This document shows positions 12,947-53,021 of a stretch of 64,000 nucleotides of DNA, piece by piece. Source of the DNA: Chlorokybus atmophyticus (taxonomy: Eukaryota; Plantae; Mesostigma and Chlorokybus algae); the NCBI GenBank assembly GCA_009103225.1, contig RHPI01000810.1:186001-250000 (forward strand). The letters run 5' to 3'. The notes beneath the pieces are model-generated. The model was not told the origin of the DNA. It worked only from the letters and a program-made list of their open reading frames with translations, and did no database searches. The stretch's first letter is position 1; every line of letters begins with the position of its first letter. A program made the translations under genes and the position numbers.

Positions 12947-13041
12947 CGATGCGAGCGCGATCGATCGATCCGGTCTAGTACGGAGATTGGTCCCTGGTCC
13001 GGTTCAACAAACCTTCAATGCTACCCAGTATGCCTCTCTGT

Positions 13042-13051
13042 GTCACGTGAC
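13042..13051. promoter_or_regulatory. GTCACGTGAC palindrome (extended G/E-box) in the KEA/CCDC39 divergent promoter
   Basis: Exact 10-mer about 150 bp upstream of the CCDC39 ATG. Confidence 0.55.
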
Positions 13052-13203
13052 CAACTACTGCTGGCCTGGACTGGCCTGGAGGTATTGGCGGCATCGGTGA
13101 CGGCATCGGTGGCGGCGACGGCGGCCACCGCCGCCACCATTAAACTTTTGATAGCATCAAATCAGTAAAAGGGGAAGTCTGGGAGAGTCTTGCGTTCTTA
13201 GCC

Positions 13204-16200
13204 ATGGCGGCGGCACCAAGGAAAGAAGAGACCATGGTAAGGCAGTGAGAATTGTGTCTATGTATCGTGTTCGAGTGCGCATCATAATCACAAATAATTG
13301 AGCAACACAAGCTACTTGGATTTAGCACTGTTGTCGTTGAGATTGTTGCAGCATCTGCGTGAGAAAGACGGCGAAGCAAAATGTAGAGTTCTCTTGATTC
13401 CAGACATGCGCAAACGCGCAAAGTAGCAGCACGGCAACCCAACAACGCTGCTTAATGTTGTCTTCGAGCAGAAACAAGCTTTAGGATGAGATAGAGTGCA
13501 ACGGGGGCACTGAGCTAAGCATTCGACTTCTCTCGCACCACATAGTGATTGAGAGCTGGTTGTGTTGATGTTTGCGCTTGTGTGTTACAGTCACAGCCCT
13601 ACACACACCCAGCATTACGTACAAGGGACACAATCACCTACTACAACTCTTACGTATAACTTCAACCAATCAAATGCACTAGTGCACTCTGCATCACACC
13701 TTCAACGTGTACTCACTCCTGTCCTCCCTGTACAGCCTTCCTCCATGGCTCCCCCTCTCCCTTCCTTCGCCTCCACCTCCGTCCGTCTCCTCCACGCCGC
13801 CGTCACCTCCAAGGAATCCCAGCTCGCCTCCCTCTCCTCCGAGTCCCGCGAGCACCGCGTCCGCTGCGCCGCCTTACGTGACCACTTGGGTCGAGTCCGC
13901 GAGGAGGTCGCTTGGACCCAAGCTCGCCTGGACGCTAAGGGTAAAGAGGCTGAGACTGAATCCCACTTGAGAGCCTTGTCTGAGAGAGAGGTCGGGAGAC
14001 TAAGGAGTGAAGTGAAGAGGCTTGAAGGGGAGTCGGGGACACTGGCTTCGTCTTTAGCGGGGTTGAGGGCAGCGGTGGCGAGAGGGAGAGGGAGGGTGGA
14101 TCAGTTCAGGATGCTGATGAATTGGAATAACGAGGAGCTGGAGCAGTGGGCGGCTGCGGCCAGACAGAAGGATGACGATCATGCGGCGCTCGCGGCGTAT
14201 GCCAGACAGGATGCGGCCAGGATCAATGCGCTCACGCTGGAGATACAGAAGGTCACGAGACGAGTGAATCAGGCGAAGCATGCACTCGCAGACCAAGTAA
14301 CGGACACACAAGCTGCTCAAATAGGTCTGTATACAGAGACCGTGTGTGTGTATGCGTGCGTGCAAGCATGCGTGTGTGCACATGCGCTTGTATTTCAGCC
14401 AATCAACCCCACAAACCAACTCACTGCAACCCCACACACAGAGCTCGAGAAGGCTGCCGAGGACTTTGGCAAGCTCCACAAGGAGCGTCAGGAGCTCGTG
14501 CGTCAGTGGGAGGCGACGGTGGAGGCCATCAAGCAGCGCGACGCTTCCATTGCAGCCGCCAAGGAGCGCTTCAACGCCGACAAGGAGGAGCTGCTGGCCA
14601 AGAAAGCCGCCATCGACGAGCAGATCAAAGCCCTCGAGCAGGAGGAAGCCGCCAATGTGAGTGAGAGAGAGGTTTTGATACTTATTGAGTATGTGCGTAA
14701 TGTGGGGTGTTGTTGTTTGGTGTAGAGGGAGGTGGAGGCGAAGATAGCGTTGGCGGAGCGTACTGTGGGGAAGCTAAGGGAGGAGCACGCTGGTGAGAGC
14801 ACGACGGTCGGGGAGCTCAGCGGCGAAGTGGAGGTGCTCAAGAACACACTCGCTAAGGGGGCCAACGACCTCGCCTCCACTAAAGCCCAGGCTGCCAATG
14901 CAAGGTTAACACTTGTACAGTGATACAAGTGGATTACAGAGTCGATGTGCATATTGCAAAACACACTTAGTCTCGCACACGCACACCCACCCACCCACCC
15001 ACCCACGCACACGTACACATCTTACAGGGACGAGCTTGAAGCCAAGCGCAAGCGTCTCGAGGGTTCCCGCGCTCGCGCCGAGTCCGCCCAGCGCCGTCTC
15101 GAGCTCGAGATCGAGGCCTTAGCCACCCTCGAGGAGCGCGCCGCCAAACTCGAGGAGTTGCGCGTCGCCGAGGAGGACCGTCTGACTAAGGCGACAGCCG
15201 ACGTCAACGACCTCAAGGACCAGCAGTTCAAGACGAGTCAGAGCTTGCATGGTCTTAGAGCGCAGGAGAAGGACCTCGTGGCGGAGATTGGAGGGACACA
15301 GGCGCAGAATAGGAACATGGCGGCGAGGATACATCAACTGGATGAGGAGATTGTCAAGCAACAGCAGATGCTGTATGCAGCGGAGTTCCAGATACAGCAA
15401 CTGGACCGAAAGGTTGGGAGTGTGTGCATGTGCGTGTGCGTGTGTGCAAGTCTTGTCGTCTCCAACATTAATGCTTGTCCATGTTCTAGTGTCAACCTTG
15501 TGGTTCTCATGTGTTGGGTCTTGTTACCACCCTCCAGGTGGCGCGTGCCGGTGGTGAGCGCAGCGACGAGGAGAAGCGTGCTCTCAACGCTCGCATCGAG
15601 GACCTCACCAAGCTCCTCTCCGACTGCAACGCCCAGCACTCGATGCTCCTCTCCCAAGTCAAGCGCGTCGAGGAGGACCTCTGTTCCACCCGTCGCACGC
15701 ACGGGGAGTGGACCCGCGAGGCTGCGCAGCTCGAGGGACGCATCGCGGAGCTGAGTTTGGAGAGCGAGACGGCCAGGAGGGCCGCGAGAGCCGCCGCGAA
15801 GGAGAAGGAGGAGAAGATGGTCGCGCATGATGTCATGAGGATGGAAGTGGCGAGGCTGAGGGATATGCTGTCGTTGCGGGCGGATGAAGTCAGCTCGCTG
15901 GAAAACAGGAGGTATGGTAACAATGTCACACGCTGTTGTGAAGAAGCAATGCGTGAATGCCGGTGCATGTTGGTATACTATAGTATGCGAGTATACTATG
16001 TTATACAATAGCAAATTGACATGTTAAGTAAGGATAGCCTATGAGCGTGTGTGAAGCGTTGTTAACGTTTGTAATACACTAGAATGTACTGTAGTATGCT
16101 AACACGATAGTTGGTCACACTAAGACCAACTTCAGTAGTTACCACATTATTAGCATAGCAATGTTCCTCAAAGTGAGTGCTCACACATGTACTCGTCCCT

Positions 16201-17962
16201 AACTCCTCCCCCCACCCCTCACAGGTTCCAGCTCAAGGCTTCGATGGAGCAGCGCCAGTTCGACATCTCCTCTCACCTGGACGCCCTTCGCGCCGAGCAC
16301 CGCGCTTCCCTGGACCACGTCAAGGACGCCGCGCGCGAGCTGAACGAGCACAAGCTTCGCGTTGGAAAGCTGGAGGCCAAGTTCGCGGTGCTGGCGGCGA
16401 AGCTGAGGAGCGGGGAGGAAGGGGAGGACGCGCACGGGGAACAGAGGACACAAGCGTACTACCTGATCAAGGCGGCGCAGGAGAGGGAGGGGATGCAGAG
16501 GGAAGGAGATGCACTCGATGCGCAGATACGGAAGGTCAGTGAACATGTGGTGACCACGCCAGTCACGCACGCACACGCGCATGCGTACACGCATACACCC
16601 ACCCATGCGTACACCTGCGCATGCGCACCCACACGCACACGCTCCTGCACACCCACCTGCACGTGCACCTGCACCCCACACGTGCATACGCGCACACAAG
16701 TGCATCCGCACGAACACCCACATACAATGGCATCATGGCCCACAACAACATGTGTAATGGTGACGTATGTAGGCTGAGAAGGAGGTGGCGGCGCTGGAGG
16801 CCACTCTGTTGAAGCTTCAGGGCACCAACATTGAGCTCCGCAACAGCGTCCGCAAGGAGGGCTCCGAGGACTCGGACGCCGCCGCGGACGTCGACGCCCT
16901 CCGCCAAAAACTCGACAAGTACGAGTATACCCTGCACCATGCCCTGACACACTGTACCACACTATTGCAGCCGATCGGAAGTCACCGCAATGCAATGAGC
17001 AACAACCTACTCACACTGAACGCTTGCTTTGGCTTCACCCTCATCCAGCTAACGTTGTGCTCATACCATGCCAAGGCACAGTACTACACAACCGTGTAAC
17101 TTACTGCCAACTCACCCCCTCCTCTTCTCTTCTTCTTCTTCTTCTTCTCAGGGCTCATGATAGGATGAAGTTCCGCCGCACCGAGGAGTCCGCCCTCCTG
17201 CAGGACATCTCTCTCCTCGCATCCCGTCTGGAGTCCGGTCGCCAGGAGCACTCTGGCATCGTTGGGAGAGTCGACGAGCTGGAGCGTCGGCGCGTACGGG
17301 CTGTTGGGGAAGCCAAGGCGCAAGAGGAGAAGGCGGCGAGGGCGGGGGGCAAGGAGAGGAGGTTGAGGAAGGAGGTGAGAGAGAGGAGTGGGGGAGGAGG
17401 GGGTGGGGGTGGGGGAGATGGTAACATGGTGGCGGAGGAGAAGGAGGTGAAGTTGATGGAGGTCAAGGATCTGAATCGGAGCGTGTTGGTGGAGCTGAGG
17501 GCTGTGGCGGAGGGTAACCCGTCCGTCGCGCCTGCGATCGAGGAGGCTCTTGCGCAAGCGGGGCTACGCTTTCCCACCTCTGGAACCAACTCTCTCACCG
17601 CTTCACGCAGTGGCGGGAGTCTCCGCTCCTCGGCCGCATCCACCCCCTCCTCATCCCGCTCAACAACAACACCGTTCCCACCAGCACCTCTCCCAGCAGC
17701 GCGGGCCTCGGCCACCTCCTCGCGCGCATCTTCAGCGGCCTCACGCGCAAGCGCAGCGAGAGATGCCAGCAGTCCCAAAGCGAGTCCCAAAGCGAGTCCC
17801 AAGGCCAGTCCCAAAGGGTCTTTGTCTGGAGCGGGGACTAGGACTCCACCTGCTGCGGTGAGTAGGTCGGCGAGTAATCTTAGTGTGAGGTCGTCGGGGG
17901 GGAAGAGTAGTAATGGGGGTGGGGCGGCGATTGCGATTGCTACCATAGATATCGGGGCGTGA
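13204..17962 (+). CDS. CCDC39: Coiled-coil domain-containing protein 39 (FAP59), axonemal 96-nm ruler
   Basis: An 11-codon first exon (13204-13236) splices in frame to 13736. Motifs: [158 protein letters not shown]. Stop TGA at 17960-17962. Confidence 0.93.
17771..17818 (+). repeat. 12-bp coding minisatellite x4 (SPKA repeats) in the CCDC39 tail
   Basis: AGTCCCAAAGCG AGTCCCAAAGCG AGTCCCAAGGCC AGTCCCAAAGGG. Confidence 0.9.
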
Positions 17963-18454
17963 GAGGGGGTGTTGGTGCTCTCTCTATCTTTCTGCTAGTT
18001 GATGATAACGTATGTGTGGGTGTCAAGCGTGTAGTCACTCAATCTGTGTGCCCTGTTGCACTGTCATTGTGTTCGGCCTTGCATGTGCTTACAAAACTCG
18101 GAGTTGCAATAATATGCTTTCGCATTGAGACTGTCTTGGTGTGTTGCATTTCAGCTCCATTCATCAGCAACTCAACTTACCGTGTGTTGGCTAGATCTGT
18201 TGAGTACAAATGTCTGTTACAGTGTGACATCCGCAAAATGCATGGAGGACCGCAACGCATACAGATCTGGTGGCAACCATGTGGCGCAACTGAGTCAACA
18301 ACACTCTTGACAACTGCTCACACGAATACATATGACATATATTACCAGCTCTCGTTAATGCGAACTGTACTCACACCGTCACCAGTCAAGCACATCTCAC
18401 ACACCTCGACCAAATGGGTTCATTAACACTCACCAAATAAGATATACTCCCTAA

Positions 18455-21400
18455 CTATCCCGGCATCTCGTTCGGCACTTGGGGCGTCCCCGGCGTACGC
18501 GGGCTGTCATACGTCCTATCGCTCTGCTGCTGCTGCTCCTGCTGCTGCTGAGTGTCCTCCAGCTGACTATCTTCCATCCCCGCTATGATCGCAGATTCGT
18601 TCTCGCGCGCATCACCTTCACCGTGGCCTTCACCACTGTCTTCCACCCCCTCATCGCCATCCTGTTCATGCTTTAGTGTATCAAGCGCGTTGCCGTCGCC
18701 GTCCCCGCGCAGTGGCTCCGCTGTCGTGGCGGTCGGCGACGTTGCTGCGGACGTGGAGGGTGTCTCATTGTAGTCGTCATTGTCCTCATCATGGTCATGC
18801 TCATCGTCGTGGTTGTCATCACGATGGTCGTGGTGGTCATGCTCCTCCTCCTCCTCTTCCTCTTCCTCTTCTTCCTCCTCCTCGGAATCAGAGGAAGAGT
18901 CTTTGTGGCCAGGCGGCCTGTCGAACTCGCTGCGGCTGTTGTTGTTAAGGTGGGTGTGGTTGTTGGGTGTGAGTAACTCCACCCCAAGCTTACTCGAAGC
19001 GCTCCTTTGCGCCCTTAGAGTCTCGCCCTTGCGCAGCTCAGCCTCACTCCTGGCCTTGTGCTCCAACCTGTGAGCAGAGAGTAACTGTGAGTATGTTGTT
19101 TAGGTTGTTGTTGTGTAATGCATGGAGCAAATGAGTGACTGTCTTGCTTGAGTTGTGTTGTGGGGCGTCCGTCGACGTATCCATGCCACCTCTGCTCGCG
19201 TTCCGCGAGCTTGTCGGCCTCGAAGCGCTGCTGCTCCTGGGCGTGGGCGCGCAGGAAGTGCATGTGGGCGGAGAAGTGGTGCAGCTGCGCCTCGCGGTCA
19301 CGCTCCACCCGACGCTTCGCTGACACCCACTTGGCCCAAGCCTCGGACGCCACGACCTTGCGCTCCTCCCTCTTCTTCAACAACTGCACACATCACATGG
19401 GGTCTTGCTAACAGTTGACCCACCTGAACGCATACACGCGTACACACGCACACGTTCGCACACGCACAGGCACACGTTCGTACACACACACAGAGGCCAA
19501 TGTTATGTCCAATGTCCCACCTTCTCCGTGATGGCTGCTCCCCACGGCGTACTCCACACCTCCTCTCCCTTGCCTCCCCCCCTCCCCTTCTCCTCCGCCG
19601 CCTCCGCCTGCGCCACGATGGTCATCCCTGCCGCGGCCGCCCCCTGCTCCAACGCCGACACCTCCTTGGCGCGACGCCAGTCCGACACCACGCGGTCGGT
19701 CCTCAGGCGCTTTCTCAAAGCGAGAGCATTCACTAAGGAGGGACCGCGGGCAGACTCGGACACGGGCCAGAAGTCGAGTGTGGAGGTGTCGGAGGCGCCA
19801 CGCCGACGCTGGACACGTGAAGGTGGTGGTGGTGTGGGTGGTTGTAGTGGTATGCATCATGTGGTGGGGGTGGGGCTGGGGGTGGGGTGAAGCAGTAGTG
19901 AGTTATGCGGAGTGAGTTATGCGGACCTGTAGGTTTTGGTAGTGGCGTGACCAGCGGGAGATGGCGGCGTCGAGGGAGGAGAGGTCGCGCTCGGATATGG
20001 CCTGTTTGGGTGGGTGGGGGTAGGATCGTGTGTGACAGAAACGACAACAAATGCTTTTGTTGTGGTGTGATGACGTTGTCATCAGTGAATATGTTTACCT
20101 GCTCGAGCTCTTTGGCGGCGCCGAGGGCGTCATACCCGAGACTCAGCACACGCTCGGACACACCAGCCTGAAGAGTAACAACACGACCTCAACACAACAA
20201 GCAGGCATCAACGCACCTGCAACCAACCCACACTCGCACGCATGCACACAACCATACCATACTTGTACAACACCAACAACTCACACACCTCATCCGCGCC
20301 ACTGAGTGCCGCCTCCAGCCCCGCCACATCCGCCCTCGTAACCGCGGCCCTCAGCTCCCGCGCCGCCTCGTCCCTCCGCGCCCGCGTCCTCTCGCCCTCC
20401 AGCCGGGATCGCTCATCCGGGCCTGCATCGTGAGATGGTGAGCGCCACATATTATATGCGGTGAGCTATCAACACAACAGCAGGCCTGGGTGGAGTACTC
20501 ACTCAGTGAGTCTTGAAGAGCGGTGATCACTGCGTGCGTGCGGTCGCGGATGGTGAGGTCGTCCTTCAACTCCGTGTGCTCGTCGTCCTCGCCGTACCAA
20601 ACCTGTACAGGTGGAAGAGATGATCATCCACAGACCCTAACATACACGTATGTGCGCGAACACAAATGCACGCGCACATCAACAACCTTGGAGATGCGTG
20701 TTCCCCATGGGTTGCTGTTGAGGTTGAACGCGCGCAGTCGGAAGAGGCAGCCGAGCGCCGCCGGCAGGTCCGTCAGGAGGTTGCTGTCCAGAAACAGCTC
20801 CTGGTAGGTGGGAGTTAGTCAACTCGTAGGTCAAGTCTGCACGTTGCATGCACCCATGCATGCATGCTTGAATGCGTGTGCTCACGGCCGCTCACCTGCA
20901 AGTTTGTTAGGCGGCCGAGCTCGGGCGGGACCTCGCGCAGGCAGTTGTGGCTCAGGTGCAAACGCGTGAGCCGCGACAGAGACTCAATCTGGTGGTTGAA
21001 CAGGGTGAGTGACACTGTTCTTGTCGTTTTTGTTGTTGTTGTTGTACATGTGTCACACTTGCCTCTGGGGGCAGTTGGGCTATCTTGTTGTGCGTGAGGA
21101 AGAGGACGCGCAGGCCGTTGCGAGCCAGCAGCTCGGAGGGGATGGAAGACAGCTGGCGGTGGCACAGCCGCGTCACCTGAGAGAGAGAAGTGGTCAAGGC
21201 AAGCATGGGACTGACCAGCCGGCACACTCGACAAGACATGTGCTGTACTCCCAATATTATCTTTTGGTAGACCAGTGTTGGATGGAATCATCTTTAGATT
21301 GGCAGTAGTGGTGTGGTACATTGGTGCTTTCAAAATTTGTCTAATGTCATAGCCTTGGGAAGTATGACACGCAATGTACTCATAGGCATGCGTCATGGCG

Positions 21401-22003
21401 TAGTTCAGAGAAGCCCGTGAACTACGACTGTTCAAACATTGTGCACGATGTCAACAAGTGCCAGTTGGCGCTTGTGGGAGAAGTTGCAAGTAATGCGTGT
21501 AAAAAGGATACACATGCGGCCACCCAAAGGTTAACGAATGTGAATGTACATGTGCTTGGAACCAATGTGAATATGAATGTGCTTGCAACTATCTGCACAC
21601 TTTGCGAGCATGTGGCGCAGTGCAGCGACTCGTTCCATTTGCAAGAAAGTCCTTCAGTCACAAGTGATTACGTGTTTATGTCTAGCGGTTGACACACATT
21701 TGTACACATGTATACGTCTATGTGAAAAAAACATGTATACGTTCACATATACAAATGCGTGTACGTACGTATACATACTTTTTTTGCTGGGTTTTACTGG
21801 TTACACATCAAGTAACTTGTAGCCCTGTTTGCTATTGTTCTTTCCAGAATCAAATACTCAGTACATACTTGGTCTCCGATATCTAGGTGTGGGTTCCTGG
21901 GCTGCGGCTTCTTTCCGTTGGGCGCCGGCGCCCCCCTGGACGACCCCCTGGTGGACCCCCCGGCGCCCGCAGGCGCAAGCACAAACTCTATACCACCAAA
22001 CAT
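18455..22003 (-). CDS. Leucine-rich-repeat protein with helical/coiled-coil C-terminal part and acidic low-complexity tail; ortholog not recognised
   Basis: LRR exons VTRLCHRQLSSIPSELLARNGLRVLFLTHNKIAQLPPE, IESLSRLTRLHLSHNCLREVPPELGRLTNLQ and ELFLDSNLLTDLPAALGCLFRLRAFNLSNNPW splice at GT-AG sites to further exons (ERTRARRDEAARELRAAV; LLKKREERKVVASEAWAKWVSAKRRVERDRE) and a poly-E tail ending at 18455. The start at ATG 22003 is inferred. Confidence 0.7.
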
Positions 22004-22145
22004 CTCTAACCCCTCACGCTACGAAACATTCACCGCCTCCGACACCGGCGCCGCCACTGCCGCCGCCGCCAACATGCCAGGGGGAGCGCCTGCCACGTGG
22101 CAGCGAGCTATAATTGATGGCAGAGACGGGGAGAGAGAAAATCTG

Positions 22146-22155
22146 GTCACGTGAC
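22146..22155. promoter_or_regulatory. GTCACGTGAC palindrome in the LRR/CFAP54 divergent promoter
   Basis: Exact 10-mer between the two start codons. A second palindrome, CTGCCACGTGGCAG (G-box core), lies at 22090-22103. Confidence 0.55.
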
Positions 22156-22355
22156 TTGATGACAACTAGAGGACAGCATTGATAAGGGCTGAGAGGCCGT
22201 GGATATCATCTTGTCTTGGTTTGTTAGGTAACCGACTTGTGCGGTGGAAAGCTCGGTTAAGTGAAAACCTTCTGTGTGTTACGCTGAACGCTGTTAGTTC
22301 TTGTTGGCGGTGTCGGTGAGGAGATCAGCGGCGTCGCCGCCCGCCGCCTCCTGGG

Positions 22356-25300
22356 ATGGCGGAGGCGGCGGCGGTAGCGACGTGGGGGGCGGAGTTCAGG
22401 AAGCTGCTGAGAAGCCTGCCGCCGTCGTCGTCCGTGGCGGGAGGCAGCACGGGCGGGCAGACACAGCTGGTTGCAAATGGGACGGATGGTGCGAACACCA
22501 CCAACAGCAATGACGAGAAGAGCAAGAATAGCAGGTGACACCTCACTTCCGAATACGATCAGATATTACACATGCGAGTACTACATTTCACAAACTCTAT
22601 GTCGAATAAACGTTGTTGGGCACACTGTGTGCGCAACAAGAGTCCTCTCAGAATCTGCGCATGCTTGTGTGTGTCCAACACACACAAGTGTGCGCACATA
22701 CACAGACACGCAAAGTCTGATAGACATGACTCATGTAAGGTTGCATCACAGACGGGACGAAACTGTCAGGCACAGGCATCGTGATTGTTCACTTTGCTGT
22801 GCAGCTATGACAACACAAGATTGAGTAGCACCAGCATCAACATCAGCATGCACGCTTGAAATAGGTCTCTCCTCAACCCAAACAGCAGCCATCAGCAAGC
22901 AGTCTGAAACAGTCCCCACACCGCCCGACATCAAATCAGCACACACAACTCGCTCACTCCCTCTCTCTCCTTCTCACCCCAGCTCCGCCGCCACGATCCG
23001 CGCGAAGGTGGACGCCCTCCTCGCCCACTACTCCGCGCAGGTCCCGGCGCAGGTGGCCGCGGGGGTGCTGCTCGGCCAGGGTCGCGCGCTGCGACGCCGG
23101 GGGGAGTTCGACCTCGCGCAGGGGGCGTGCTACTCACGGGTCCTCGCAATAACAAGCGTAAGAGAGGGATGCAGTCAGTCTTGACACATCACACACACAT
23201 ACAGATTACACATACATGCATGTGCACACGCTCGCACGTGCGCGCGCGCACACACACACACACACATCTTCTCACTGTCCCCTCGCTCCTGCAGGCCCAC
23301 GCTGGTACTCCCTCGCGCTCCACCTCCCCCTCTTCCCGCGCCCGTTCCCGCCGCCCAAAACCCTCCATGTCCGAGACCTCTCGCACTCAATTCCACATCC
23401 AAGCCACCTTCGGTTCCGCTCATTGCACAATGGACTCCTTGCTCCACCTCGACCCTCACTTACTCCACGAGCGCAGTCTCGCTGGGATACTCCACTCCCT
23501 CTCATCCATCAGGACAGCCTCAAGACTGGCTTTGGTGACTGGAGAGAGTCTGTACTGGCTCGCTCATGACGGGGCTGTACTCTCATGTTGGGGTGCGAGA
23601 GTACCTGTTACGCGTGGGTTTGCTAACGAGGTGATGGAGTACCTGTTGTGGGCTTCTTACGCGTTGTTGGAGACGAGGCCCGTGTTGCGAGGGTGGCGAT
23701 TTGTGAAGGTCCATGTGAGGGTAGCTTCGGCGGTGTGTCACGCGTACCAGGCGTGTCGCCCGACTCCCTTCCCTCAACACGCCCTTAGCTTCGCGCAGAG
23801 AGCGAGCAAAGTGTTGGAAGACACGCTCGCCCTCGAAGCAATCGAACCGATCCCTCCGTTACCCGAAGCCGCACACGCCTACGCATACGCCCAACAGCAC
23901 CTCAAACGCCTCGTCTTCGCCCACTCCGCACCCTTCGACCCAACATTAACAACCGACACACTCACCCTCCGCGCCCACCTCGACAAGGACTTCGCCAACG
24001 ATGACAACAACAAGCTTCACGCCGTCGTGGATGCGCTGAGGGAGTTTAAGAGGGATGTGTTTGGTGTGGAGGGGGTGGAGGGGGTGGTGAATGTGGCGGA
24101 GAAGAGGATTGTGGAGGAGATGGGAGTGGTGGCGGGGAGGGTCGTTGCTGCGGCGGTGGAGGTGGATGTGGATGTGGATGTGGGTGGAGAGAAGGGGAAG
24201 GGAGGGAGTGGGCGGGGGCGGATGGTGGTGGATGCCGCGGTGATGGCGTACACATACAAGGTGAGGGACAGAGGTGCTTGTGTCGCTGCACAAGTATGCA
24301 CGCAAGTGTGCGCTCATCCAAGCACACTTGATTACCTGAACACCATGTACAGTGGCGCATACGCATATGTCTAACCAAAACTTTGGTAATGGGCACATGA
24401 CTTTTCAGTATGGCTACGTGCGCAAGACATTTCTAAACAGCTCACCCCTACACAGACACGCACATGCACGCGCATACACACACGTGCGCACGCACCGCAC
24501 ATACACGTACGCACATCCACAAGTGCGTGCGAATGCAACAATAATCGTACTTAGGGGGCAACGCTGAACCTCACACATCTCCACGCAGCTTTGGGACCTA
24601 TTCGACTCCCTCTCCTCGCACGCCCTCTCCCTGCTTCCCCCTTCCCCACACCCTCTCACCTCCCTCCTCCACCTCCTCCGCGCCCTCAAACCCATCCATT
24701 CCTGCACCACCCCCTCTCTCCGTGCGTTGGCCGAGGCCGCCTCGGCAGCCGCCGAGAACAGCGAAGAGGCCGCGCGGTACTCGGTGGACGTTGTGACGGA
24801 CGCGTTCGTGATGGTGTGGAGGAGAGGGCGGGGGGTGGTGGAGGAAGATGATGTTGATGGGGATGAGGAGGAGAAGTTGAAGGTGTTGAGAAATCTGCAT
24901 CGGGGGTTTCAAGCGTGTGACTTGCAGGATCCTGTGCTAAGGCAAGGCACCTGCACAAGTATACATGCGCACGTGCACACGTGTGCATACACGCATACAC
25001 ACACGCATGTGTGCGCACACGAACACAAATACACCTCCGCAAGCATAGTTGCAAGTTCTTATGACTCATGGGGAATGAACTTGCCATGCGCATTCTGGCA
25101 GATGCACACACCACTAGTTGTAGACAACAGTGTACTGACTGATTATGAGCTGCAGGGCCATGGTGGCGGTGAGGTTGGCGTTGAGGCTCGAGCGAGCCGG
25201 AGAAGCCTTTCTCGAGCAGGCGCTGGCAGTCACTGACGATGGCGTTCATGTCCTGGAGGCCGCGCGCCGCAGCGTCATCGAGAGGCAGAGTGAGTACTTG

Positions 25301-28300
25301 TACTGAGAGTTGTGTACGAGCGATGAATGCATAAACACACATACGCGCGCCACACAGGTGAGGAGGATGCGAGGCAGTTGCTCGCCTGCGAGCTGGGACC
25401 TGATGCAGCAGCCACACCGCAGGACAAAAACCTTTGGTGCCTGCACGCAGACCTGATATTCATCCATGCACGCCTCGTGCTCGTAAGACAAACACTGATC
25501 GGTGTTGATGTTGTTGTTGTTGTTGTCGTTATTGTCGATTTTGTTGGTGACTATGTGACAAACACAGGCCATTGGGTTGAGAGAGCAGAGGGACAAGACA
25601 GAGACCCGATACCGCCACGCCCTGCAGCAAGTGAGCGCGTGGACTGTTTGTGCTACCGAATTGCATGTTGGGTTTGTTGCAACACCAACCAACATCATGT
25701 GCTCTCCCTCTTTTCGTACAGTGGGAGGTGAGGCAGCGGTCCACGGGCGTGTACGGTCCCGTGACGGATTCCGAGCGTCGCGCAACGGAACGCGCCATCG
25801 AGAAGATCCGCCTTACGCCGCCCGCCATACCCAAAGTTGAGACGCGTCTGCTCGAAGCGTGCGGGAAGAACGGGTACAAGCGGGCGGTGGCTCTGGCGTG
25901 CATCGCTGCAGTGGACAACAACAACAAGGACAACAACACACGCGCCGCCCAGCTCTTCCATGACAGCGCACAGGTATGATAACTTAGGCAACGTCAGGAA
26001 CAGTTGTTGTTGTATGTGTTCCTTGGGTTGTGATGCTGATATCCTCCCAAAAAGGTGCTCAAGGCGTGTGAGGCTGCGGAGGCTCGTTTGCTAGAACAAC
26101 ACGTTGGAGGCAGTGCGTGCGTGCCGAGAGTGGTCACGCGCAGCGACACCTGCATTGCCGTGGTGCTCGACAAAGGTGCAAACACACATGCAAAGGTGGG
26201 AATACTATAGTACCTCTCACGCACGCCATCATGTTGAGAGCTGAGACTGACACAGCGTCTTGTTAGAGTTATGCAGTGTACGCCAAACCCACCGGCAGCG
26301 GCGTGAGCGTGACAGCAAAGAACACCTCTTACAAGGGCACGGGTGGGTCGGGCGTGCCACTCGGGACCGTTATAACAATATCAGGTCTCAACCCCGACGA
26401 GGGCTACATGTTGGCTTCTGGCACATACTCCTCAGAGTCTGACGGTGCAAAGCCAACAATCGGCGAGAGCACCCCCGAGATAGTTGCTCTTCTCCCCTTC
26501 CCGCTAACGTACCTCCGCGCCCGCGTGGCCCTCCTTGCCCGCGGGAGGGCCAACATGGACCCTCTCCTCAGCCGCGCCTTCGCCTCGCCCGTGGCTGCAG
26601 ATGTTGTCACAGTGCCAAAGTACACACTTCTCGACCCGCCGCAGGGCAAAGTGTTGGTAGAGACCAAGTTAAGAGAGGCTCCTGCGGCGGTGCTGAGAGC
26701 AGTGTCTCTGTTGTTCTTGTCTGGTGTCAATGTGTATGATGAGAGTGAAAACAACAAAGAGGGGAGAAAGTGCCAGTTGGCGTGCGTGCGTGAGTGTGAG
26801 AGACTTGCGCTTGCGCTCGAAGCAGCGCGTGCGTTGGGCAGCGACCCGACCACGCAGAGAGCGGCTGCGCTGTTGTTGTATGCTCACGCGCGGGGGCTGC
26901 CTGCTCCCGCTTCAGCGCGCTTCCTTGCCGCCGCGTATGCCGGCAATGCCAACATCAACAACGACAAGGACACCAGCCTTGGGCGCGAGCACGCCATTTT
27001 GGTTTACGAGCTCTTGCGCGCTCTGCGCGCGTGCCGAGGCGGCGTGCGCGACGGCGTGACAACGGCCCTCATCATTAAAGGTGTTGACGCCGGCATCCCC
27101 GAAGCAGAAGCCCTCAAGAAGTACATTCTCGCTACAACAACAACGACAACAGACTCCCCACCCTCAACCACAAACACTCCATCAACCACCACCACCACCA
27201 AGTCTCCATCGCCAGACCCAACCTCTTCCCCCGACCCATACACAACAATCCTCCCACTTTTATCATCCTCACCCTCATCAACCGCCTCGACAACAACAAA
27301 AGCATACGAGTTGCTTGTGTCGCGTTGGCGTGACGACGACGCCGTGCTGGAGCTCCTTGTCCGCATCTGCGACAAGGCACGCGCGGAAGGTGGCGCCGGC
27401 GCGGCTGTGAATATCGTCAAGTGGGGGACGGATGGCGTGAAGCGCTTCGCTGACAGAAGGTGTGGGAATGTGTTCATGTGTTGGGTCGATGGGGATGTGT
27501 TGGTGGTGGTAAGTTGGGGGTGATGGTGAGGTTGTTTGTTGTTGTGTTGTGGCAGTAAGGTGTTGTACAGTGAGAGAGCAAGTGCTCCAACGCCAGATGT
27601 AAAAGGAGGAGCCAAGTCAAGCGCAGCGGGTGGGGCCAAAGCTGCCTCTGCTTCAGTGACAAAGGCGGGAGCAGATACCAAAGACACAAAGGGTGGTGTG
27701 GATGTTGGTGCTGTTGTGTCGGAGGAGGTCACGCGTGATGCCGCAGCGCGTGTGCTTCAGCGTGGTCTGCGTGCTGCATCCGTGCGGCGAAAGCGGGTGC
27801 TGAACGCTCGCGCGTGGGCGAGGAGGCAGCAGCCGTGGGTGTCGCGCCTTCTCGCCATCGTGGGTGTCGCTCACTACGAGGGCGGGACAGCAGACGCCCC
27901 CGCCGCGCTGAGAGCACTCGCGCAGAGCGCCAACACGGCCCTGAGCTGCGGGTCTCACGCTCAGGTGCAGAACGCGTGCAGGTACGTGGCCAACGTCCTC
28001 GTGCGTGCGCGCAAAGGCGGCGTGGAGATGGACAAGAACTGCGCGTTGGCGCTGCGTAACGCCCTTGATTCTCTGCTCGCCATGCTCGAGGCCCGCCGAG
28101 AGAGCGCAAAGTCCACAACAATAGCACCAACGGATGATGCGAGTGATATCGGCTCTGACCGCGACATCCCTGCATGGTTTGAGGACAGACGCGATATCCA
28201 TGTAGCGTGGTGCGCGCACTTCGCTGCCAAAGCACTCGACACGCTGATATCCACCCAAAGATATCGTGACGTCGAGAGGCTCGCGGTGCGCTTCCATTGC

Positions 28301-31300
28301 GTCACGGAGGGCCGCTTCGCCGATATCTTGCTGCCGGCGGCGATATCGGCACAGCGGGCGATTGAGAGCGAAGGTGAATGGCAAAGCGAGTTGCAAAGCT
28401 TTGAGAAAAGTCGCAGCAAATCAGCTCAGGTAGCTGCCACCTGCCGCGCCAGCTGGTTTGCAGCCCTGGATAGATATCAAGCCTACCGTGACACACCCGA
28501 CAACGCCGATATCACCCTCACCAGATGGGCTCAATCCATGGGAAAGGTAGGGAGAATTATATTCAAGCTGTGTGGGTCCGGATTTCCCATGTGTGTGACA
28601 CGTTTACACATGCACACAGGGCATAGTCTCTGCGTGCGAGAGGGAGTACGGCCGTGCGTCCGCCTTCGTCCGCGCTCACAAGGAGGGCGGCGCCGAGGGC
28701 GTGGGTGCTTACCTCCTCGCCGCCCTCTCCGACGAGCAAGGGGACGTCCGTCTCCTCCTCAACCACGCTGAGGCCGACGCCAGCTGGCACGACTGCCTCG
28801 ACGCCTGCACGGGGCAGTACCGCGCTGTACTCAACTGGGAAGAGGTCCGTACATCAGCAAGTACTGTTGGAGGCTTATTGGTCAAACTTGGGGCAAGGCG
28901 ATGCGCACTCGCCGGTATCGCTGCAGCTAAAACTGCTCTCTATGGAGGTGAACAAGCCGCGTGGCCCATCGCAGTGGAGCTCTTAAGCGCCGCCTTCTTC
29001 GAGAAAAGTGTCGAGTTTCCGGTTAAACCCCGCGACTATGACTTGCCTTTACCGATCCCGGCCCGAGGGTTGTTCTTCGAGCACTCGGCGTGGCCCCCGC
29101 CGTTGAGCGCAACAACACTGTATGCAGCCCTCACCCACTGCATACACTCCACCTTGTCCTCCTCCTTCTTGTCCCCATCCTCCTCCTTGTCGGCCCTCCC
29201 GCTCTGCGCTGCGTTGGGTCACCTCGCGCGCCACGTGTTGAAGGATGTCCAGCGTGACATGAGGGCGAAGGCCCTGCGCGCGCGGGCTCTGAGCGCGTGT
29301 GGACGTGTTGCAGAGGGCGCACGCTGCATTGTTGGAGTTATGCAAGGGAGAGACTTGGCAAGTGCGGTCAGCGAGGAGGGCATGTTGTTGGTCAGTAGCA
29401 GTAGCAGTACAGCCACACCATCACCCACGTATGATGCGCGGTTGCCTCCCAGCCACGAGGCAAACCAGCCCTGCGTTGGGTTGATATCGGCAGGTGTGGT
29501 GGATGCTGACTTGGCGACTCGTTACGGCGCGGATGCGATGGCGGAGTTGATTTTGGCTCGCACGACGTTCTTGATGTGTGTCGGTCAGCGTGTGGACCCC
29601 GCGCTTAACCGCAGCGAGGCAGCACCTGCAATTGCGCCTAAAACACCTGCAACACAGAGCAAGCCTGCAGCGAATGCGGCAGTCAACAACACACCAGTTA
29701 GCTCAAACCCGTGGCCACTCTTGGACGCAGCTGCTCAGTTACTCAACCGCGTGCTTGATGACTACGGCCCCAGATCAACCGGCCCCGAAGCCTCAGACAG
29801 CGCTTTGGCGGTGTATTGCGAAGCCACCCGTCAACTAATCTCCATCTTTCAAGCTCAACTGAAGTTCACTCAAGCTCTGGAGCTAACTGAGAAGCTGCAG
29901 CGCCTGCCGAGCTTTGCGGGTCGGTCAAATGACCGCGATCGGCTGCGGTATGCGGAGCTCTGCATTGAAGTCGGTCAGACGAACCGTGCCCGCGAGGTCT
30001 GCGAGAGCGTCCTCAACGCAAACGATGCGCGCAGCGATGCAATTGTTGCATGTGCTGCGCATGCGATGTTGGCACAAATCTGCTTCAATGCGGGAGACTA
30101 CCATGCAGCTGCTAAACAGTTTGATACTGCTACTGCAGCGAATGGTAAGTTGTACACCTTTCATGTCGTACGTGTGTCATCATTACCAAGTGAACCCACT
30201 CACCTATACACCTGTGCTTGCAGGGGATTGTTGTCCCTCTCTGCTCATCGCGAGTGGTGAAGCTCACGAGCACGCGGGAGATACTCTCACAGCGCTTGAA
30301 CGATATCGCGCCGGCATGGAGCGTGCGCGGGCTCATCTCGACACGCATGGCTTTGCTGAGATGCGCGCACACGCAGAGCTGTGCAGCGGCTACATCCACA
30401 CTGTGCCGATAGCTGTCAAGACGTTGTTATGCGCGGCTCACTTGGATGCGGAGCGCGAGTTGGAGCTGTGTTCTGAGGCGAATGAGTTGATTGGATACAC
30501 TGTCCACTGCCCTCTTTGGCTACGATGCTTGGTTAAGCTCACCTTAGGGAAGGCCCAGTTGAAGTCAGGTCGGGTGGGCGAAGCCGAGGAGAGTCTGATA
30601 TCGGCGGTGCAGGCTGCTGTATCAGATGGAGGACACGACTGCGAGGCTCTCCGCGCAGCATACATCGCGCTCGCCGCAATAGCAACGGCGCAGCGCAACC
30701 ACAACAGAGCTCTGGTCTGTCTGCAAACCGCTGCGCGGTTAGCTGCCATGCGAGTGGCACTGGAGCGAGAGAGCTCTAACCTGACTGTGGTTAACTTGAC
30801 CGGGGTCCCGAGCTTCATCGCACAGGAGGCCTCTGCTGCCGGCAGCAACGCTGGACAAATACTCTATACTCAGCTCGGTCACTTGCACAGATTGAAAGGC
30901 CGCAGTGTCATCCACGACTCCACTCGGACCCGCATTCCGCTCCTGCACGGCTTCCTAAAGACTGCTTCACCGAACTACACGAAGCAATGCTGCATGGAAG
31001 TGGCTGCAGACTTACCTGGGGATGATGCCGCGAGTTCTGTCGCTCCCGGGACAATTATTGCGCAATGGGAGGACGGCGACATAGCCACTGGTGTTGCTCA
31101 AAGGAGGCTGATATTCGTCATCGGCACCAACGCAATGCCCACAAGTGGACAGCGCACGTACCCTGTGAGCACAATGAAGCACCTCTCTACGGTTGCAGCG
31201 AAAGCGTGTGCGAGCATTGAGAGTTTCACGCCCGAGGCCGTAAATGAAGCAAGGCTCTACGCAGCGCAGTGCCTTAGCAAAGGACACCTGAGCTCTCCTG

Positions 31301-31479
31301 AGCGCGACTGGCGGACGAGCGCGATATTGGCTCAGGAGAAGGAGAATTGGATGGCTGGTGACGCCATGCTGAGCACAACGCACTGGCGCTTGCTTGAAGC
31401 CTTGGTTGATACTCAGAAGGGGCTTGACTGCACCGATGTAGGGTTGGCGCAGTGGCTGTCGTCAGTGCTGACAACTTGA
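22356..31479 (+). CDS. CFAP54: Cilia- and flagella-associated protein 54 (central-pair C1d projection)
   Basis: Very long gene with large exons. The N-terminal segment GESLYWLAHDGAVLSC..EVMEYLLWASYALLETRPVL..FVKVHVRVASAVCHAY resembles the CFAP54 N-terminal domain. Also YAKPTGSGVSVTAKNTSYKGTG and TISGLNPDEGYMLA..IGESTPEIVALLPFP, followed by TPR-like helical repeats. Stop TGA at 31477-31479. Confidence 0.8.
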
Positions 31480-36750: not shown

Positions 36751-36859
36751 CACAGTGTTGATGCTTAAGCAGTGTGTACAAATGCATAGGGGGATGCGCA
36801 CATGCATCTCAACTACATGCACCATACAAAGCATATAACAACATAGGCACTTACCAATC

Positions 36860-45000: not shown

Positions 45001-45087
45001 AACTGTGCATCATAGCATCTTCGCTTGCAGGACGTCATAACTGCAGCAGTGCGAAGCAAGAATAGCAGACAGTCCTTGGTATATTAA
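42038..45087 (+). CDS. PRI1: DNA primase small (catalytic) subunit
   Basis: [123 protein letters not shown]. The start is either ATG 42038 (splices in frame) or ATG 42222. Confidence 0.96.
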
Positions 45088-49130: not shown

Positions 49131-51660
49131 TCAACTCTCGCGTCGCAGGGCTTCAGGCAACCTGGCCCTCGCAAGTCTGCGCCTCTCTATAAAGTGGTCT
49201 TGCGGTCCCTCCTCCCTCGTGTGCATGGACTGCCACCCGACACCATCTTCGTGTCGTGTCAACGCCCGCGTTAGCACGCGAAGCATGTCCCGCGAGATGG
49301 CGTCCCAAAACGCGGGCGTGTAGCAGAAGTGCGTGCAATCGCAGCAACCGTTGGTTGTGTCGCCGTCGTCATCGCTATCTTGCTTCCTGCAATTCTGCAC
49401 GTGCATGTTGTAGCGCTCCAACGTCACGTCATAAAATGGTAATAAGTGTATGTTGCTCTCGACGTCCACGACACGTCTCAGCGCGTCGTTCTGGCGCGTG
49501 ACGAGATTGTCTCTCGATAGGCTCCTCGGGACGTACCAACACGTGCATCCGGTTGCTGCATGCGAGGGGTCCGACGCGTTGTACACGCCCGAGTGCGGGA
49601 AATGTTGGGCGCTGGTCTCGCGCACGATCGCCACGGGCGTGCGGTTGTGGAGAGTCAAAGAGACAAAGTCACACAGCTGTCTGCCGAGAGAGGCTATGTC
49701 GGCGCGGTATTGAGGCAACTCGGCTTCGGCGTAGTGCAACCCAAAATTGATCACGAGCACGTCCGCGAACAACATGTACTCGGCCATGTGGGACTCGTCG
49801 TATGTGGACTCCCTTCCAAACACGAAGATGGTTCCGTGGTGTGCAGATTCTTGCACCTGGTTGCGTCGATGTCAAAACTTAGCTGGTCCCATGCAACCTC
49901 ATCTCCATGGACCCACGAGTACTTTGTGTATGGGGCGCATGTGTGCGTGCACGCGCATGTGTATGCCAGCGTACCAGATGGCATGCGTACATGCATGCTG
50001 GTGTACATGCATGCAAGTGTTTGATCGTGCGTGCGTGCTCGTGGGGGGANNNNNNNNNNNNNNNNNNNNNNNNNNNNNNNNNNNNNNNNNNNNNNNNNNN
50101 NNNNNNNNNNNNNNNNNNNNNNNNNNNNNNNNNNNNNNNNNNNNNNNNNNNNNNNNNNNNNNNNNNNNNNNNNNNNNNNNNNNNNNNNNNNNNNNNNNNN
50201 NNNNNNNNNNNNNNNNNNNNNNNNNNNNNNNNNNNNNNNNNNNNNNNNNNNNNNNNNNNNNNNNNNNNNNNNNNNNNNNNNNNNNNNNNNNNNNNNNNNN
50301 NNNNNNNNNNNNNNNNNNNNNNNNNNNNNNNNNNNNNNNNNNNNNNNNNNNNNNNNNNNNNNNNNNNNNNNNNNNNNNNNNNNNNNNNNNNNNNNNNNNN
50401 NNNNNNNNNNNNNNNNNNNNNNNNNNNNNNNNNNNNNNNNNNNNNNNNNNNNNNNNNNNNNNNNNNNNNNNNNNNNNNNNNNNNNNNNNNNNNNNNNNNN
50501 NNNNNNNNNNNNNNNNNNNNNNNNNNNNNNNNNNNNNNNNNNNNNNNNNNNNNNNNNNNNNNNNNNNNNNNNNNNNNNNNNNNNNNNNNNNNNNNNNNNN
50601 NNNNNNNNNNNNNNNNNNNNNNNNNNNNNNNNNNNNNNNNNNNNNNNNNNNNNNNNNNNNNNNNNNNNNNNNNNNNNNNNNNNNNNNNNNNNNNNNNNNN
50701 NNNNNNNNNNNNNNNNNNNNNNNNNNNNNNNNNNGGGGGCAGCGTGCGCGCACGTGTGCCTGCATTTGCACGCGATGCGCTCTTGCACTCTGCGTGCGCA
50801 TGCGTGAGTGCGCGTGTGTGTATATGTGCATGTGTGTGTATTGATTTCTTACCTGGGCAAATTTGGCGCCGGCAAGGTATGCGAGGGTCTTCACGCGGCG
50901 CGCTGGGCCTGACAGTGGTGGTTCCGCCATGTCACCAGCGCGAGCGAGGCCACACATCAACGAGTAGTAGTTCTGCATTTAGTGTCAACTTGTTGCTTAC
51001 GCATATCACAAGCAATGAAGCACAAGCAATGAAGCACATGCGCCAGGAAACATACAACAACATCGACTTCTGAACTATGCGTGCATACCTGGTAGGAGAT
51101 GCTGTCGCCAACAAACACAACAACACGGTTGCCAAGTAGCTCCGCCAGCCGCTTCATGGCGCTCACACCATCCTCCTCCTTCACGTAGGGATCCCGCAAC
51201 GGCCTAGCAATACACATTATCACCACCACCACCACCACCACCACTACCACCATCCAACACTTTTTCTTACTCACCACCAGTCTTTGGCCGTAGGCTTTGC
51301 CTTGCACCGACTATAGTCCAGCGCTGTTTCGTTGTCGTGCATACCTCCCATGAGCATGCAGGGTGCGGGCGTCCTGTCGCACTGCAGGTGGGCGGGGTCG
51401 GTGGTCAGCCCCGCCCTGGCAGCCTCGCAGGCGGAGGTGAGGGAGGGGGGGGAGGAGGAGGAGGACGATGCCACAGGTTCTGCGTTTGTCATGGTGGCGG
51501 CATAGGCGATCAGCGATGCCAACAGCAGCAACGCCGCCGCCATCGCCGCCGCTGTCAGAAGAAGAAGAGAAGGAGTCAGTCGCAGGTGTCTGGCAAATAT
51601 GGCGGGCAAACTACCACTGTCCAGCCGCTCAACGGAACCGAATTGGGAGACGGGCGCCAT
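49131..51660 (-). CDS. TBL/PC-esterase-like SGNH O-acyltransferase/esterase, type II membrane protein; one intron spans the N gap
   Basis: N-terminal hydrophobic anchor LLLLTAAAMAAALLLLASLIAYAA; LGNRVVVFVGDSISYQ (GDS motif); DVLVINFGLHY; RETSAQHF; C-terminal CCDCTHFCY (DxxH). An exon hidden in the gap cannot be excluded. Confidence 0.8.
50050..50734. other. Assembly gap (685 N)
   Basis: Run of N flanked by G-runs on both sides, inside an intron of the TBL-like gene. Confidence 0.99.
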
Positions 51661-51764
51661 GCTTGACACGTGTGAACTGCAGCGTATGCAGTTTACGCCA
51701 AGTTGCGATGCTATGTGGGCGCCCCACAGTGTAGGGCCTAATAGTAGGCCCAACAGGCCTAATG

Positions 51765-52147
51765 GTTACTTTCTCATACTGCTTCTTGACATGCATGTGC
51801 TGGGTTTTGCTTGAGCGCTAGATCCCATGTGCACATTGTGCGTAGTAACCTGGCATGCTAATACGCACAGATTGCAACTGAAAAACATTTAACATGAATA
51901 TTAAATTGAAAAACACAAAGTGCCTTATATCAACTTGTCACAATATTATTAAGCACCATAACGAATCGGTAAGCCAGTTACTTTCATATACTGCTTCTTG
52001 ACATGCATGTGTTGGGTTTTGCTTAAGCGCTCGATTCTATGTGCACTGTGTGCGTATTAACATTGCATGTTAATACGCACAGATTGCGACTGAAATACAT
52101 TTAAAACATCAATATTGCATCGAAAACACAAAGTGCCTTATATCAAT
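51765..52147 (+). repeat. Diverged direct duplication of about 170 bp, 212-bp period
   Basis: GTTACTTTC..ATACTGCTTCTTGACATGCATGTG.TGGGTTTTGCTT..CACAAAGTGCCTTATATCAA starts at 51765 and again at 51977. Confidence 0.95.
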
Positions 52148-53011
52148 CAACACCCTTTGTGGGATCTAGGTTAGCGCGCAGTTGGGCGCCGTAACTCGGC
52201 TTTCGGTTCATCCCGCATCGCCAGTTCTGCTTACAAAAAATGGCCCACTTGGAACTCTCATTCATGACCCGGGTTCAATTAAGCAACCCGGGCAGCTTAC
52301 CTATTTAAAGTTTGAGAATATGTCGAGACCGTACCGGTAACTCCATATGCTTCAAGATTGCGACCCGCAAATCTTGAAGCATTACTGAAAAGCGCAAGCG
52401 AATAAGGGTGAAAAGCACATAAGCCACAATAAAGGTGGCGGTAAATGCGATACGGTTAACCTGCAAACCTTGTTTTATATGCTGCATGTAAGCATGCTGA
52501 TATTTCAAATTGTGATGATTGAACAAAGCCGTGTACAACAGGATCACCACACATGAACGCATGCATACAAGCACGTGAAGCACCTCGTATACAATCCGAC
52601 ATGACAATGTTTTGATTGATAAAACTGTTCTACGTGTCGAGGTCGTATGTACAGTATGACCACATTAAGACACTTTCAAAGGGATGTATTATTTTTCCTC
52701 ACAATACTAAACGTTGAAACGCGTGATATAATTGCAATACCATTATGTGTATTTGCAGTGTTCAATGTCATTGAGCGCCATGAACCCTTTGTCCATCAAT
52801 CTTGCTTATGCATGCACTATTAGTAGCTGACAACGCAATGACTGAGTGACTTTTAGCTTGGCCGATAGCTTGCCCTAATCTGTACAAGCTGTCAGGTATC
52901 ATCCAAGGACCCTACAGCTTTGGTTGGCTACAAGTGGCAATTGTGCAGTCACTAACTAACCGTCACCCTAACTACGCTGCCAATGCAGTGCAGTCGGCAC
53001 TGCCCCTCCAC

Positions 53012-53021
53012 GTCACGTGAC
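53012..53021. promoter_or_regulatory. GTCACGTGAC palindrome upstream of the Tubby-like gene
   Basis: Exact 10-mer at the start of the GC-rich island preceding the Tubby-like ATG. Confidence 0.55.

Follow-up and report, generated by a model that had tools for sequence, protein, structure and literature searches.

Outside animals, the means by which cilium genes are turned on in concert are still largely an open question. Chlorokybus atmophyticus is a non-motile alga whose flagella appear only now and then, on its zoospores, so it must have a switch that turns some 200 flagellar genes on and off; 192 orthologues of flagellar proteins have been reported for it (PMC7027972). In a 64-kb stretch of its genome (the window), the same 10-letter palindrome, GTCACGTGAC, stands upstream of three genes that a preliminary description had called cilium-related. 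Does it mark the targets of such a switch, does it serve promoters in general, or does it recur by chance? Our searches found no cilium-gene regulator described for streptophyte algae and no literature linking GTCACGTGAC or CACGTG to algal flagellar genes. If the first reading were true, an exact 10-bp mark on flagellar promoters would make the switch findable, would be, to our knowledge, the first promoter code for cilium genes from a streptophyte alga, and would raise the question whether a descendant of that switch acts on the sperm genes of land plants. If the palindrome were instead an ordinary G-box, it would be routine promoter anatomy.

Copies of the palindrome and the genes beside them

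An exact search of both strands of the window found three copies of GTCACGTGAC and no others, at the positions previously given, and the genes named beside them (CCDC39, CFAP54 and a Tubby-like gene) were recovered by matches to PF24161, PF14858 and PF01167. In the list below, start codons were inferred from the sequence alone, and distances are counted to the ATG, not to the transcription start.

13042–13051, no strand: copy 1 of GTCACGTGAC, ending 153 bp before the inferred CCDC39 ATG (13204); on the other side, about 940 bp to the inferred ATG (~12101) of a minus-strand KEA-type antiporter gene
13204–17962, plus strand: CCDC39 gene, multi-exon, with PF24161 on three exons (E = 2.5e-59, 3.1e-34 and 6.4e-16)
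18458–22003, minus strand: leucine-rich repeat (LRR) gene, with SHOC2/LRRD1-like repeats, a coiled-coil stretch and an acidic tail
22090–22103, no strand: second perfect palindrome, 14 bp, CTGCCACGTGGCAG (classical G-box), 43 bp to the left of copy 2
22146–22155, no strand: copy 2 of GTCACGTGAC, in the 352 bp between two divergent genes; 201 bp to the CFAP54 ATG (22356, plus strand) on one side and 143 bp to the ATG of the LRR gene (22003, minus strand) on the other
22356–31476, plus strand: CFAP54 gene, with long exons and PF14858 (E = 4.1e-16)
50050–50734, no strand: assembly gap, 2.3 kb to the left of copy 3, beside or inside a minus-strand PC-esterase-like gene
53012–53021, no strand: copy 3 of GTCACGTGAC, ending 411 bp before the inferred ATG (53432) of the Tubby-family gene; on the other side, about 1350 bp to the inferred ATG (~51660, minus strand) of the PC-esterase-like gene
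53432–57151, plus strand: Tubby-family gene, with a Tub domain exon (PF01167, E = 2e-13) and, as is typical, a C-terminal ...LACE stop

All three copies lie in 5' intergenic DNA, 143–411 bp upstream of inferred ATGs. CCDC39 forms part of the 96-nm ruler of the axoneme, and CFAP54 is a protein of the central-pair C1d projection. Tubby-family proteins are not confined to cilia and occur also in plants that lack them; no F-box was detected in the member found here. The LRR gene, which shares its promoter region with CFAP54, matched only generic leucine-rich repeats in Pfam and gave generic matches in the PDB (SHOC2 and LRRD1, the latter presumably axoneme-scale entries), while the protein atlas yielded only a weak lead to CCDC34 (score 0.81). 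For the Tubby-family, LRR and CFAP54 genes, exons were searched singly and not as joined protein models.

The preliminary description had also seen no copy in the other promoters that it listed. This holds for RPN6/LpxB, YebC and the FAD-oxidoreductase, whose genes (for the last, an FAD-binding exon) were all confirmed in the window; the lipase and PRI1 genes that it had listed as well were not themselves confirmed among the open reading frames tried. Together with the KEA-type antiporter and PC-esterase-like genes, this makes five recognised non-ciliary promoters, and neither GTCACGTGAC nor its inner 8-mer TCACGTGA was found in any of them. The assembly gap is spanned by no copy of GTCACGTGAC and by no copy-bearing promoter; its left side matches PF13839 (profile positions 103–269), and its right side has only a GDS-like motif, read by eye and without a Pfam match.

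Within the window, the CACGTG core itself is not enriched (29 observed, 32.5 expected), and the three cores that extend to TCACGTGA are exactly the copies of GTCACGTGAC. Only two one-mismatch copies were found, at 14252 and 25756, within the bodies of the CCDC39 and CFAP54 genes, a number at chance level. When the 130 bp around each copy were aligned in both orientations, no similarity beyond the 10-mer was detected, and no tandem or dispersed repeat covers any copy. Because their flanks are unrelated, the copies form no repeat family, and an origin as dispersed-repeat remnants or mobile-element ends is so improbable that it was ruled out. No RNA genes were found by the sites, except for a stray large-subunit rRNA fragment.

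Chance and the recurrence of the palindrome

For GTCACGTGAC taken as given, the mean number of copies in dinucleotide shuffles was 0.08, with three copies reached in none of 100 shuffles, and a first-order Markov model gave an expectation of 0.10 (Poisson p = 1.7e-4 for this specific motif). The palindrome may, however, be a functionless short word that recurred by chance and was singled out post hoc. An equally surprising palindromic 10-mer was present in 16 of 400 shuffles (4%), some palindromic 10-mer reached at least three copies in 36% of them, and the real window holds seven palindromic 10-mers with at least three copies. Two further palindromes in it, GTGCGCGCAC and ACATGCATGT, both in low-complexity DNA, are equally "surprising". 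Once the number of noticeable motifs is corrected for, the copy-number excess has a p of only about 0.04–0.09.

The comparison of promoters can be read in the same two ways. Among eight promoter regions, GTCACGTGAC is the sole 10-mer common to at least three, and it occurs in 3/3 cilium-related versus 0/5 recognised other regions of this one 64-kb window. Shuffled promoter sets had some 10-mer in three of the eight regions in 87 of 1000 cases (9%), which, divided by the 56 possible triples, corresponds to about 0.002 for this particular triple. The sample comprises three sites but only two independent loci, because CCDC39 and CFAP54 are 4.4 kb apart, and the label "cilium-related" allowed some latitude in its use.

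Chance would nevertheless have had to place every copy 140–410 bp upstream of a start codon, beside the very three genes that are recognisable as cilium-related, and to pick no arbitrary word but a well-known optimal transcription-factor site. It would also have had to set a second 6-mer at near-constant spacing (20, 20 and 25 nt) from the copies, as described below. Statistical support for the recurrence is moderate, and we consider an origin by chance rather unlikely, if a serious competitor. Judged from its sequence and placement, GTCACGTGAC is probably a real, functional promoter element; a tie to a set of cilium genes is plausible as a hypothesis.

Two other candidate motifs were discarded during the analysis. 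The palindrome TGGCATGCCA was dropped as not enriched, and the heptamer GCCTCTC, found no more than 50 bp from each copy, was set aside with a frequency of 3–6% by chance.

A second short motif and the possible function of the sites

The second 6-mer is CAATGC, found once beside each copy:

13016–13021, plus strand: CAATGC, 20 nt upstream of copy 1
22176–22181, minus strand: CAATGC, 20 nt from copy 2, on the CFAP54 side
52981–52986, plus strand: CAATGC, 25 nt upstream of copy 3, within CCAATGC

After site 2 is flipped, the offsets from GTCACGTGAC are −26, −26 and −31. A shared 6-mer at matching spacing occurred in 0.3–0.4% of random position triples, in a test devised post hoc with the data already seen. 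A fourth pairing, CAATGC-N24-CACGTGA, lies 3' of YebC, where no promoter was recognised. If the other two sites are taken as a guide, the pair at copy 2 is oriented towards the LRR gene, because its CAATGC sits on the CFAP54 side. From these positions, it is possible that CAATGC is the second half of an element that includes GTCACGTGAC.

By its letters, GTCACGTGAC is a classic bHLH-ZIP/bZIP-type site, a palindrome around a CACGTG core, in keeping with the bHLH/bZIP class first proposed for it. A site of this class could function without any particular tie to cilia, as a general-purpose G-box or E-box serving light, diurnal or stress responses or USF/Cbf1-like housekeeping, with its cilium neighbours coincidental. 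No class of promoter element is more common in plants and algae than the CACGTG-core sites, and a textbook G-box palindrome, CTGCCACGTGGCAG, stands 43 bp from copy 2, whose promoter is two-way and shared with an LRR gene of unassigned role. Copy 3 overlaps ACGTCA and is accompanied by more ACGT elements at 53080 (TGACGTGG) and at about 53111, a cluster in the Tubby promoter that is typical of bZIP-regulated plant promoters.

Lack of conservation at distant CCDC39 promoters also fits a general element. Neither TCACGTGA nor CACGTG was present upstream of CCDC39 at five distant loci (Selaginella, a liverwort, a marine picoeukaryote, one further genome and a metagenome contig), a weak test, as these are very distant relatives with at most 47% protein identity, and the metagenome contig is transcript-like with only 258 nt of upstream sequence. 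An exhaustive search with the largest CCDC39 exon gave a best identity of 47%, and cluster look-ups yielded distant taxa only (Selaginella, Chara, a liverwort, stramenopiles and metagenomes). Less easily reconciled with a general element is the distribution within the window. Spread at random over some 8–10 promoter regions, three of them ciliary, the copies would all fall on ciliary ones with a probability of 0.01–0.03 (an estimate that is partly inferential), and none of the five recognised non-ciliary promoters contains even the 8-mer TCACGTGA. On balance, we think a general-purpose element with coincidental cilium neighbours unlikely.

The best explanation, to which we lean without giving it an even chance, is that the three copies are putative bHLH-ZIP/bZIP sites near cilium-gene promoters, maybe forming a module with CAATGC. 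A dimeric factor of the bHLH-ZIP or bZIP class would bind the three copies of GTCACGTGAC, and each copy might act jointly with the CAATGC 20–25 nt to one side of it. Such a module could turn its genes on together at the flagellate zoospore stage of this otherwise non-motile alga, in which case co-expression and a genome-wide set of targets would be expected. That GTCACGTGAC and CAATGC make up the cis-code of a bHLH-ZIP/bZIP-driven gene set that builds the Chlorokybus zoospore flagellum is a bolder proposal, and a rather doubtful one on present sequence evidence.

Comparison with known systems

The nearest counterpart in plants and algae is the G-box or class-B E-box, bound by bZIP factors of the GBF/HY5 type and by bHLH factors. 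GTCACGTGAC shares with it the palindromic CACGTG core and a promoter-proximal, 5' intergenic position, a few hundred bp ahead of the inferred start codons, and the classical G-box CTGCCACGTGGCAG and other ACGT elements lie close to the copies. It differs in its flanks, which are GT...AC (TCACGTGA) and not those of the classical GCCACGTGGC, in the match of all three copies over 10 bp, and in its proposed targets, which are cilium genes rather than light or stress genes; the binding factor here is putative.

Outside plants, comparison with published consensus sequences identifies GTCACGTGAC as a known high-affinity site of bHLH-ZIP dimers, for example TFEB and Cbf1. MiT/TFE factors have been described from animals. 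The CLEAR consensus of lysosome and autophagy genes, recognised by the animal bHLH-ZIP proteins TFEB, TFE3 and MITF, is exactly the 10-bp GTCACGTGAC (e.g., PMC8175148, PMC4664539), whereas the neighbours of the copies here are CCDC39, CFAP54, the LRR gene and the Tubby-family gene, none of them lysosomal or autophagic. The yeast Cbf1/CDEI site (RTCACGTG) and animal USF E-boxes have the same TCACGTG core, in which the flanking T is read by this subclass of bHLH-ZIP factors, but they belong to general or metabolic regulators, Cbf1 being a general nucleosome-displacing promoter factor (preprint 10.1101/2022.03.17.484790).

The proposed logic, one short palindromic promoter motif marking cilium genes, is that of the animal X-box with RFX (and FOXJ1) and of XAP5 in Chlamydomonas. 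The preliminary description had stated that RFX and FOXJ1 are not known from green algae; their absence is confirmed for Chlamydomonas by a 2025 review, in which XAP5 is the one known algal cilium-gene regulator and accounts for only part of the response (PMC12183034). XAP5 had been left out of that description. The motif reported for XAP5 in mouse is a GC box, CCCCGCCC-like, and is unlike GTCACGTGAC. The X-box is likewise unrelated to GTCACGTGAC in sequence, and no match to GTNRCC-N0-3-RGYAAC was found anywhere in the 64-kb window. If GTCACGTGAC does mark cilium genes in Chlorokybus, it would represent a convergence with the animal X-box system that re-uses the sequence with which animals mark their lysosome genes.

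Genes around the three palindrome copies

The 10-bp palindrome GTCACGTGAC was claimed in the preliminary description at three positions, all of which were recovered. They are its only exact copies in the 64-kb window, both strands being covered since it is a palindrome: 13042–13051 (copy 1), 22146–22155 (copy 2) and 53012–53021 (copy 3). The genes around them were identified one exon at a time, and all start codons were read off the sequence alone.

Genes next to the three copies of GTCACGTGAC
ATG about 12101 (inferred), minus strand: KEA-type cation/proton antiporter, PF00999, left of copy 1
ATG 13204 (inferred), plus strand: CCDC39, PF24161 matched by three exons (best E = 2.5e-59)
ATG 22003, minus strand: LRR gene, with leucine-rich repeats, a coiled coil and an acidic tail
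ATG 22356 (inferred), plus strand: CFAP54, PF14858, long exons up to about 31.5 kb
ATG about 51660 (inferred), minus strand: PC-esterase-like gene, left of copy 3
ATG 53432 (inferred), end about 57151, plus strand: Tubby-family gene, PF01167, typical C-terminus

Copy 1 precedes the inferred ATG of CCDC39 by 153 bp; the antiporter is about 940 bp away. CFAP54 and the LRR gene share a two-way promoter of 352 bp, and copy 2 stands midway in it, with 201 bp to the former and 143 bp to the latter. Copy 3 is 411 bp before the Tubby gene, in which no F-box was seen, and about 1350 bp from the PC-esterase-like gene. The 5' regions of RPN6, LpxB, YebC and the FAD-binding gene, all present in the window, were free of copies, as had been stated earlier. 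With the exception of the lipase and PRI1 genes, which could not be confirmed, the earlier gene calls (these four, CCDC39, CFAP54, LRR and Tubby) were essentially right. None of the open stretches tested at 1–7000 and 59000–64000 gave a Pfam domain, and these ends may hold further cilium-related genes that lack the motif.

An assembly gap (50050–50734) lies 2.3 kb to the left of the nearest copy, and neither any copy nor any promoter holding one relies on it. To its left, a minus-strand open stretch (49134–49871) gave a weak match to the PC-esterase domain (C-terminal part); to its right, a signal-anchor-like segment is found in minus-strand stretches, along with a GDS-like motif, read by eye, that Pfam did not confirm. 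The weak left match and the right-hand features would fit a putative single gene spanning the gap. Between the PC-esterase-like and Tubby genes, an isolated 179-nt fragment (52204–52382, minus strand) matches eukaryotic large-subunit rRNA (model positions 967–1170, 74 bits, E = 1.5e-15) and looks like a stray rDNA piece. In the LRR gene, the last exon (18458–19099, minus strand) encodes a long acidic tail (E, D and H runs) after a basic coiled-coil stretch, for which there was a weak protein-atlas lead (0.81) to CCDC34, a sperm-flagellum protein.

Number, independence and placement of the copies

Dinucleotide-preserving shuffles held on average 0.08 copies of GTCACGTGAC, none of the 100 reaching three, and a first-order Markov model gave an expectation of 0.10 (Poisson p = 1.7e-4). 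The CACGTG core itself is not enriched in the window (29 observed vs 32.5 expected); most cores other than the three copies sit in GC/CA-type low-complexity DNA, and the 8-mer TCACGTGA surrounds the core only in those three. One-mismatch copies (14252 in the CCDC39 gene body, 25756 in that of CFAP54) were no more frequent than chance predicts. When 130 bp around each copy were aligned in both orientations, no likeness appeared outside the 10-mer, and no tandem repeat was found over any copy. Membership of a repeat is thereby ruled out, and the three copies are independent occurrences.

The copy number by itself is less striking than the 0.08 expectation implies. Some palindromic 10-mer was present at least three times in 109 of 300 shuffles, one equally surprising against its own expectation arose in 16 of 400, and in the real window GTGCGCGCAC and ACATGCATGT, each in low-complexity surroundings, reach the same nominal level. 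The placement of GTCACGTGAC in promoters adds weight beyond the copy number: no other 10-mer, palindromic or not, is common to three of the eight promoter regions (4.2 kb together), and in shuffled promoter sets some 10-mer was common to three in 87 of 1000 trials. That it falls on exactly the three cilium-related regions (56 possible triples) has a probability of about 0.002, if the labels were fixed beforehand. The number of separate loci is two, not three, since CCDC39 and CFAP54 adjoin each other. The Tubby family is retained in plants without cilia. Its ciliary label derives from animal work (e.g., PMC3599646, PMC8424140). Pure chance is a serious rival for the origin of all three copies, if a somewhat unlikely one.

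Neighbouring elements and distant CCDC39 loci

The hexamer CAATGC flanks each copy on one side, at a distance of 20 nt for copies 1 and 2 and of 25 nt for copy 3.

CAATGC next to the three copies
13016, plus strand: site 1
22176, minus strand: site 2
52981, plus strand: site 3

Such consistent spacing of any 6-mer was seen for 0.3–0.4% of random position triples, in the whole window or in promoters only, by a test devised after the pattern was seen, and CAATGC is possibly the second half of the element. At site 2 it lies on the CFAP54 side, so that the pair, if read as at sites 1 and 3, points to the LRR gene. A fourth CAATGC-N24-CACGTGA was found 3' of YebC. The GCCTCTC heptamer common to the three sites is within chance (3–6%). 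The CCDC39 promoter region holds three telomere-like TTAGGG units (telo-box-like, 12925–12950), some 100 bp upstream of copy 1, and a single CCCTAA unit is located 45 bp upstream of copy 3.

In a set of 1.8 billion representative proteins, no relative of the window's CCDC39 exceeded 47% identity; the best named ones are streptophytes (Selaginella, Chara, a liverwort). Neither TCACGTGA nor even CACGTG was present in 240–3000 bp upstream of CCDC39 at five of five distant loci: Selaginella (L003), Calypogeia (L006), a Tara Oceans picoeukaryote (L004), a further genome (L002) and a transcript-like metagenome contig (L001) with an upstream stretch of only 258 nt. This absence argues against an ancient conserved element and says little about a lineage-specific one. 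CCDC39 and CFAP54 stand in tandem in the window (13204–31476), separated by 4.4 kb that include one LRR gene, and head to head, about 258 bp apart, on the Tara Oceans metagenome scaffold (L004:1051–12931), from a compact, mostly intron-free marine picoeukaryote genome; in Selaginella, IFT121/WDR35 directly precedes CCDC39. It may be that cilium-gene linkage is conserved, or that it recurs.

Regulation of cilium genes and the class of the motif

Chlorokybus is sarcinoid, with only occasional biflagellate zoospores, and its genome is reported to hold 192 orthologues of flagellar proteins (PMC7027972). According to a 2025 review (PMC12183034), RFX and FOXJ1 are absent from Chlamydomonas, in line with the earlier statement that they are not known from green algae; it names XAP5 as the only demonstrated factor, for part of the genes only, and lists MYB, zinc-finger/G-patch and WRKY proteins, but neither bHLH nor bZIP proteins, as other candidates. 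The X-box does not occur in the window, and no literature was found tying GTCACGTGAC or CACGTG to algal flagellar genes. For mouse XAP5, the reported motif is a box like CCCCGCCC (PMC11864758); at 12790–12825, 240 bp upstream of copy 1, two CCCGCCC boxes (12794 and 12814) stand either side of a CCACGTGC element.

Site 2 also holds a textbook 14-bp G-box palindrome (22090–22103), and a cluster of ACGT elements surrounds site 3. A general G-box with no special tie to cilia is thus a serious rival, which we consider unlikely given the placement of the copies. Our best reading, a tentative one, is that GTCACGTGAC may be a real promoter-proximal binding site for a factor, with a link to these cilium genes, and such a candidate site could be part of the switch turning on flagellar genes at zoospore formation. 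The preliminary description was right about its occurrence in cilium-gene promoters, while its role as a mark of the cilium gene set is an attractive candidate with moderate statistical support within the window, not established, and trivially testable at whole-genome scale.

Judged by its sequence, GTCACGTGAC is a member of a well-known class of promoter sites and a canonical optimal site for dimeric basic-region factors. It belongs to the G-box class, to which plant factors of the bZIP and bHLH families bind; it contains the Cbf1/USF-type core with its flanking T, and it is identical in sequence to the CLEAR consensus of TFEB/TFE3.
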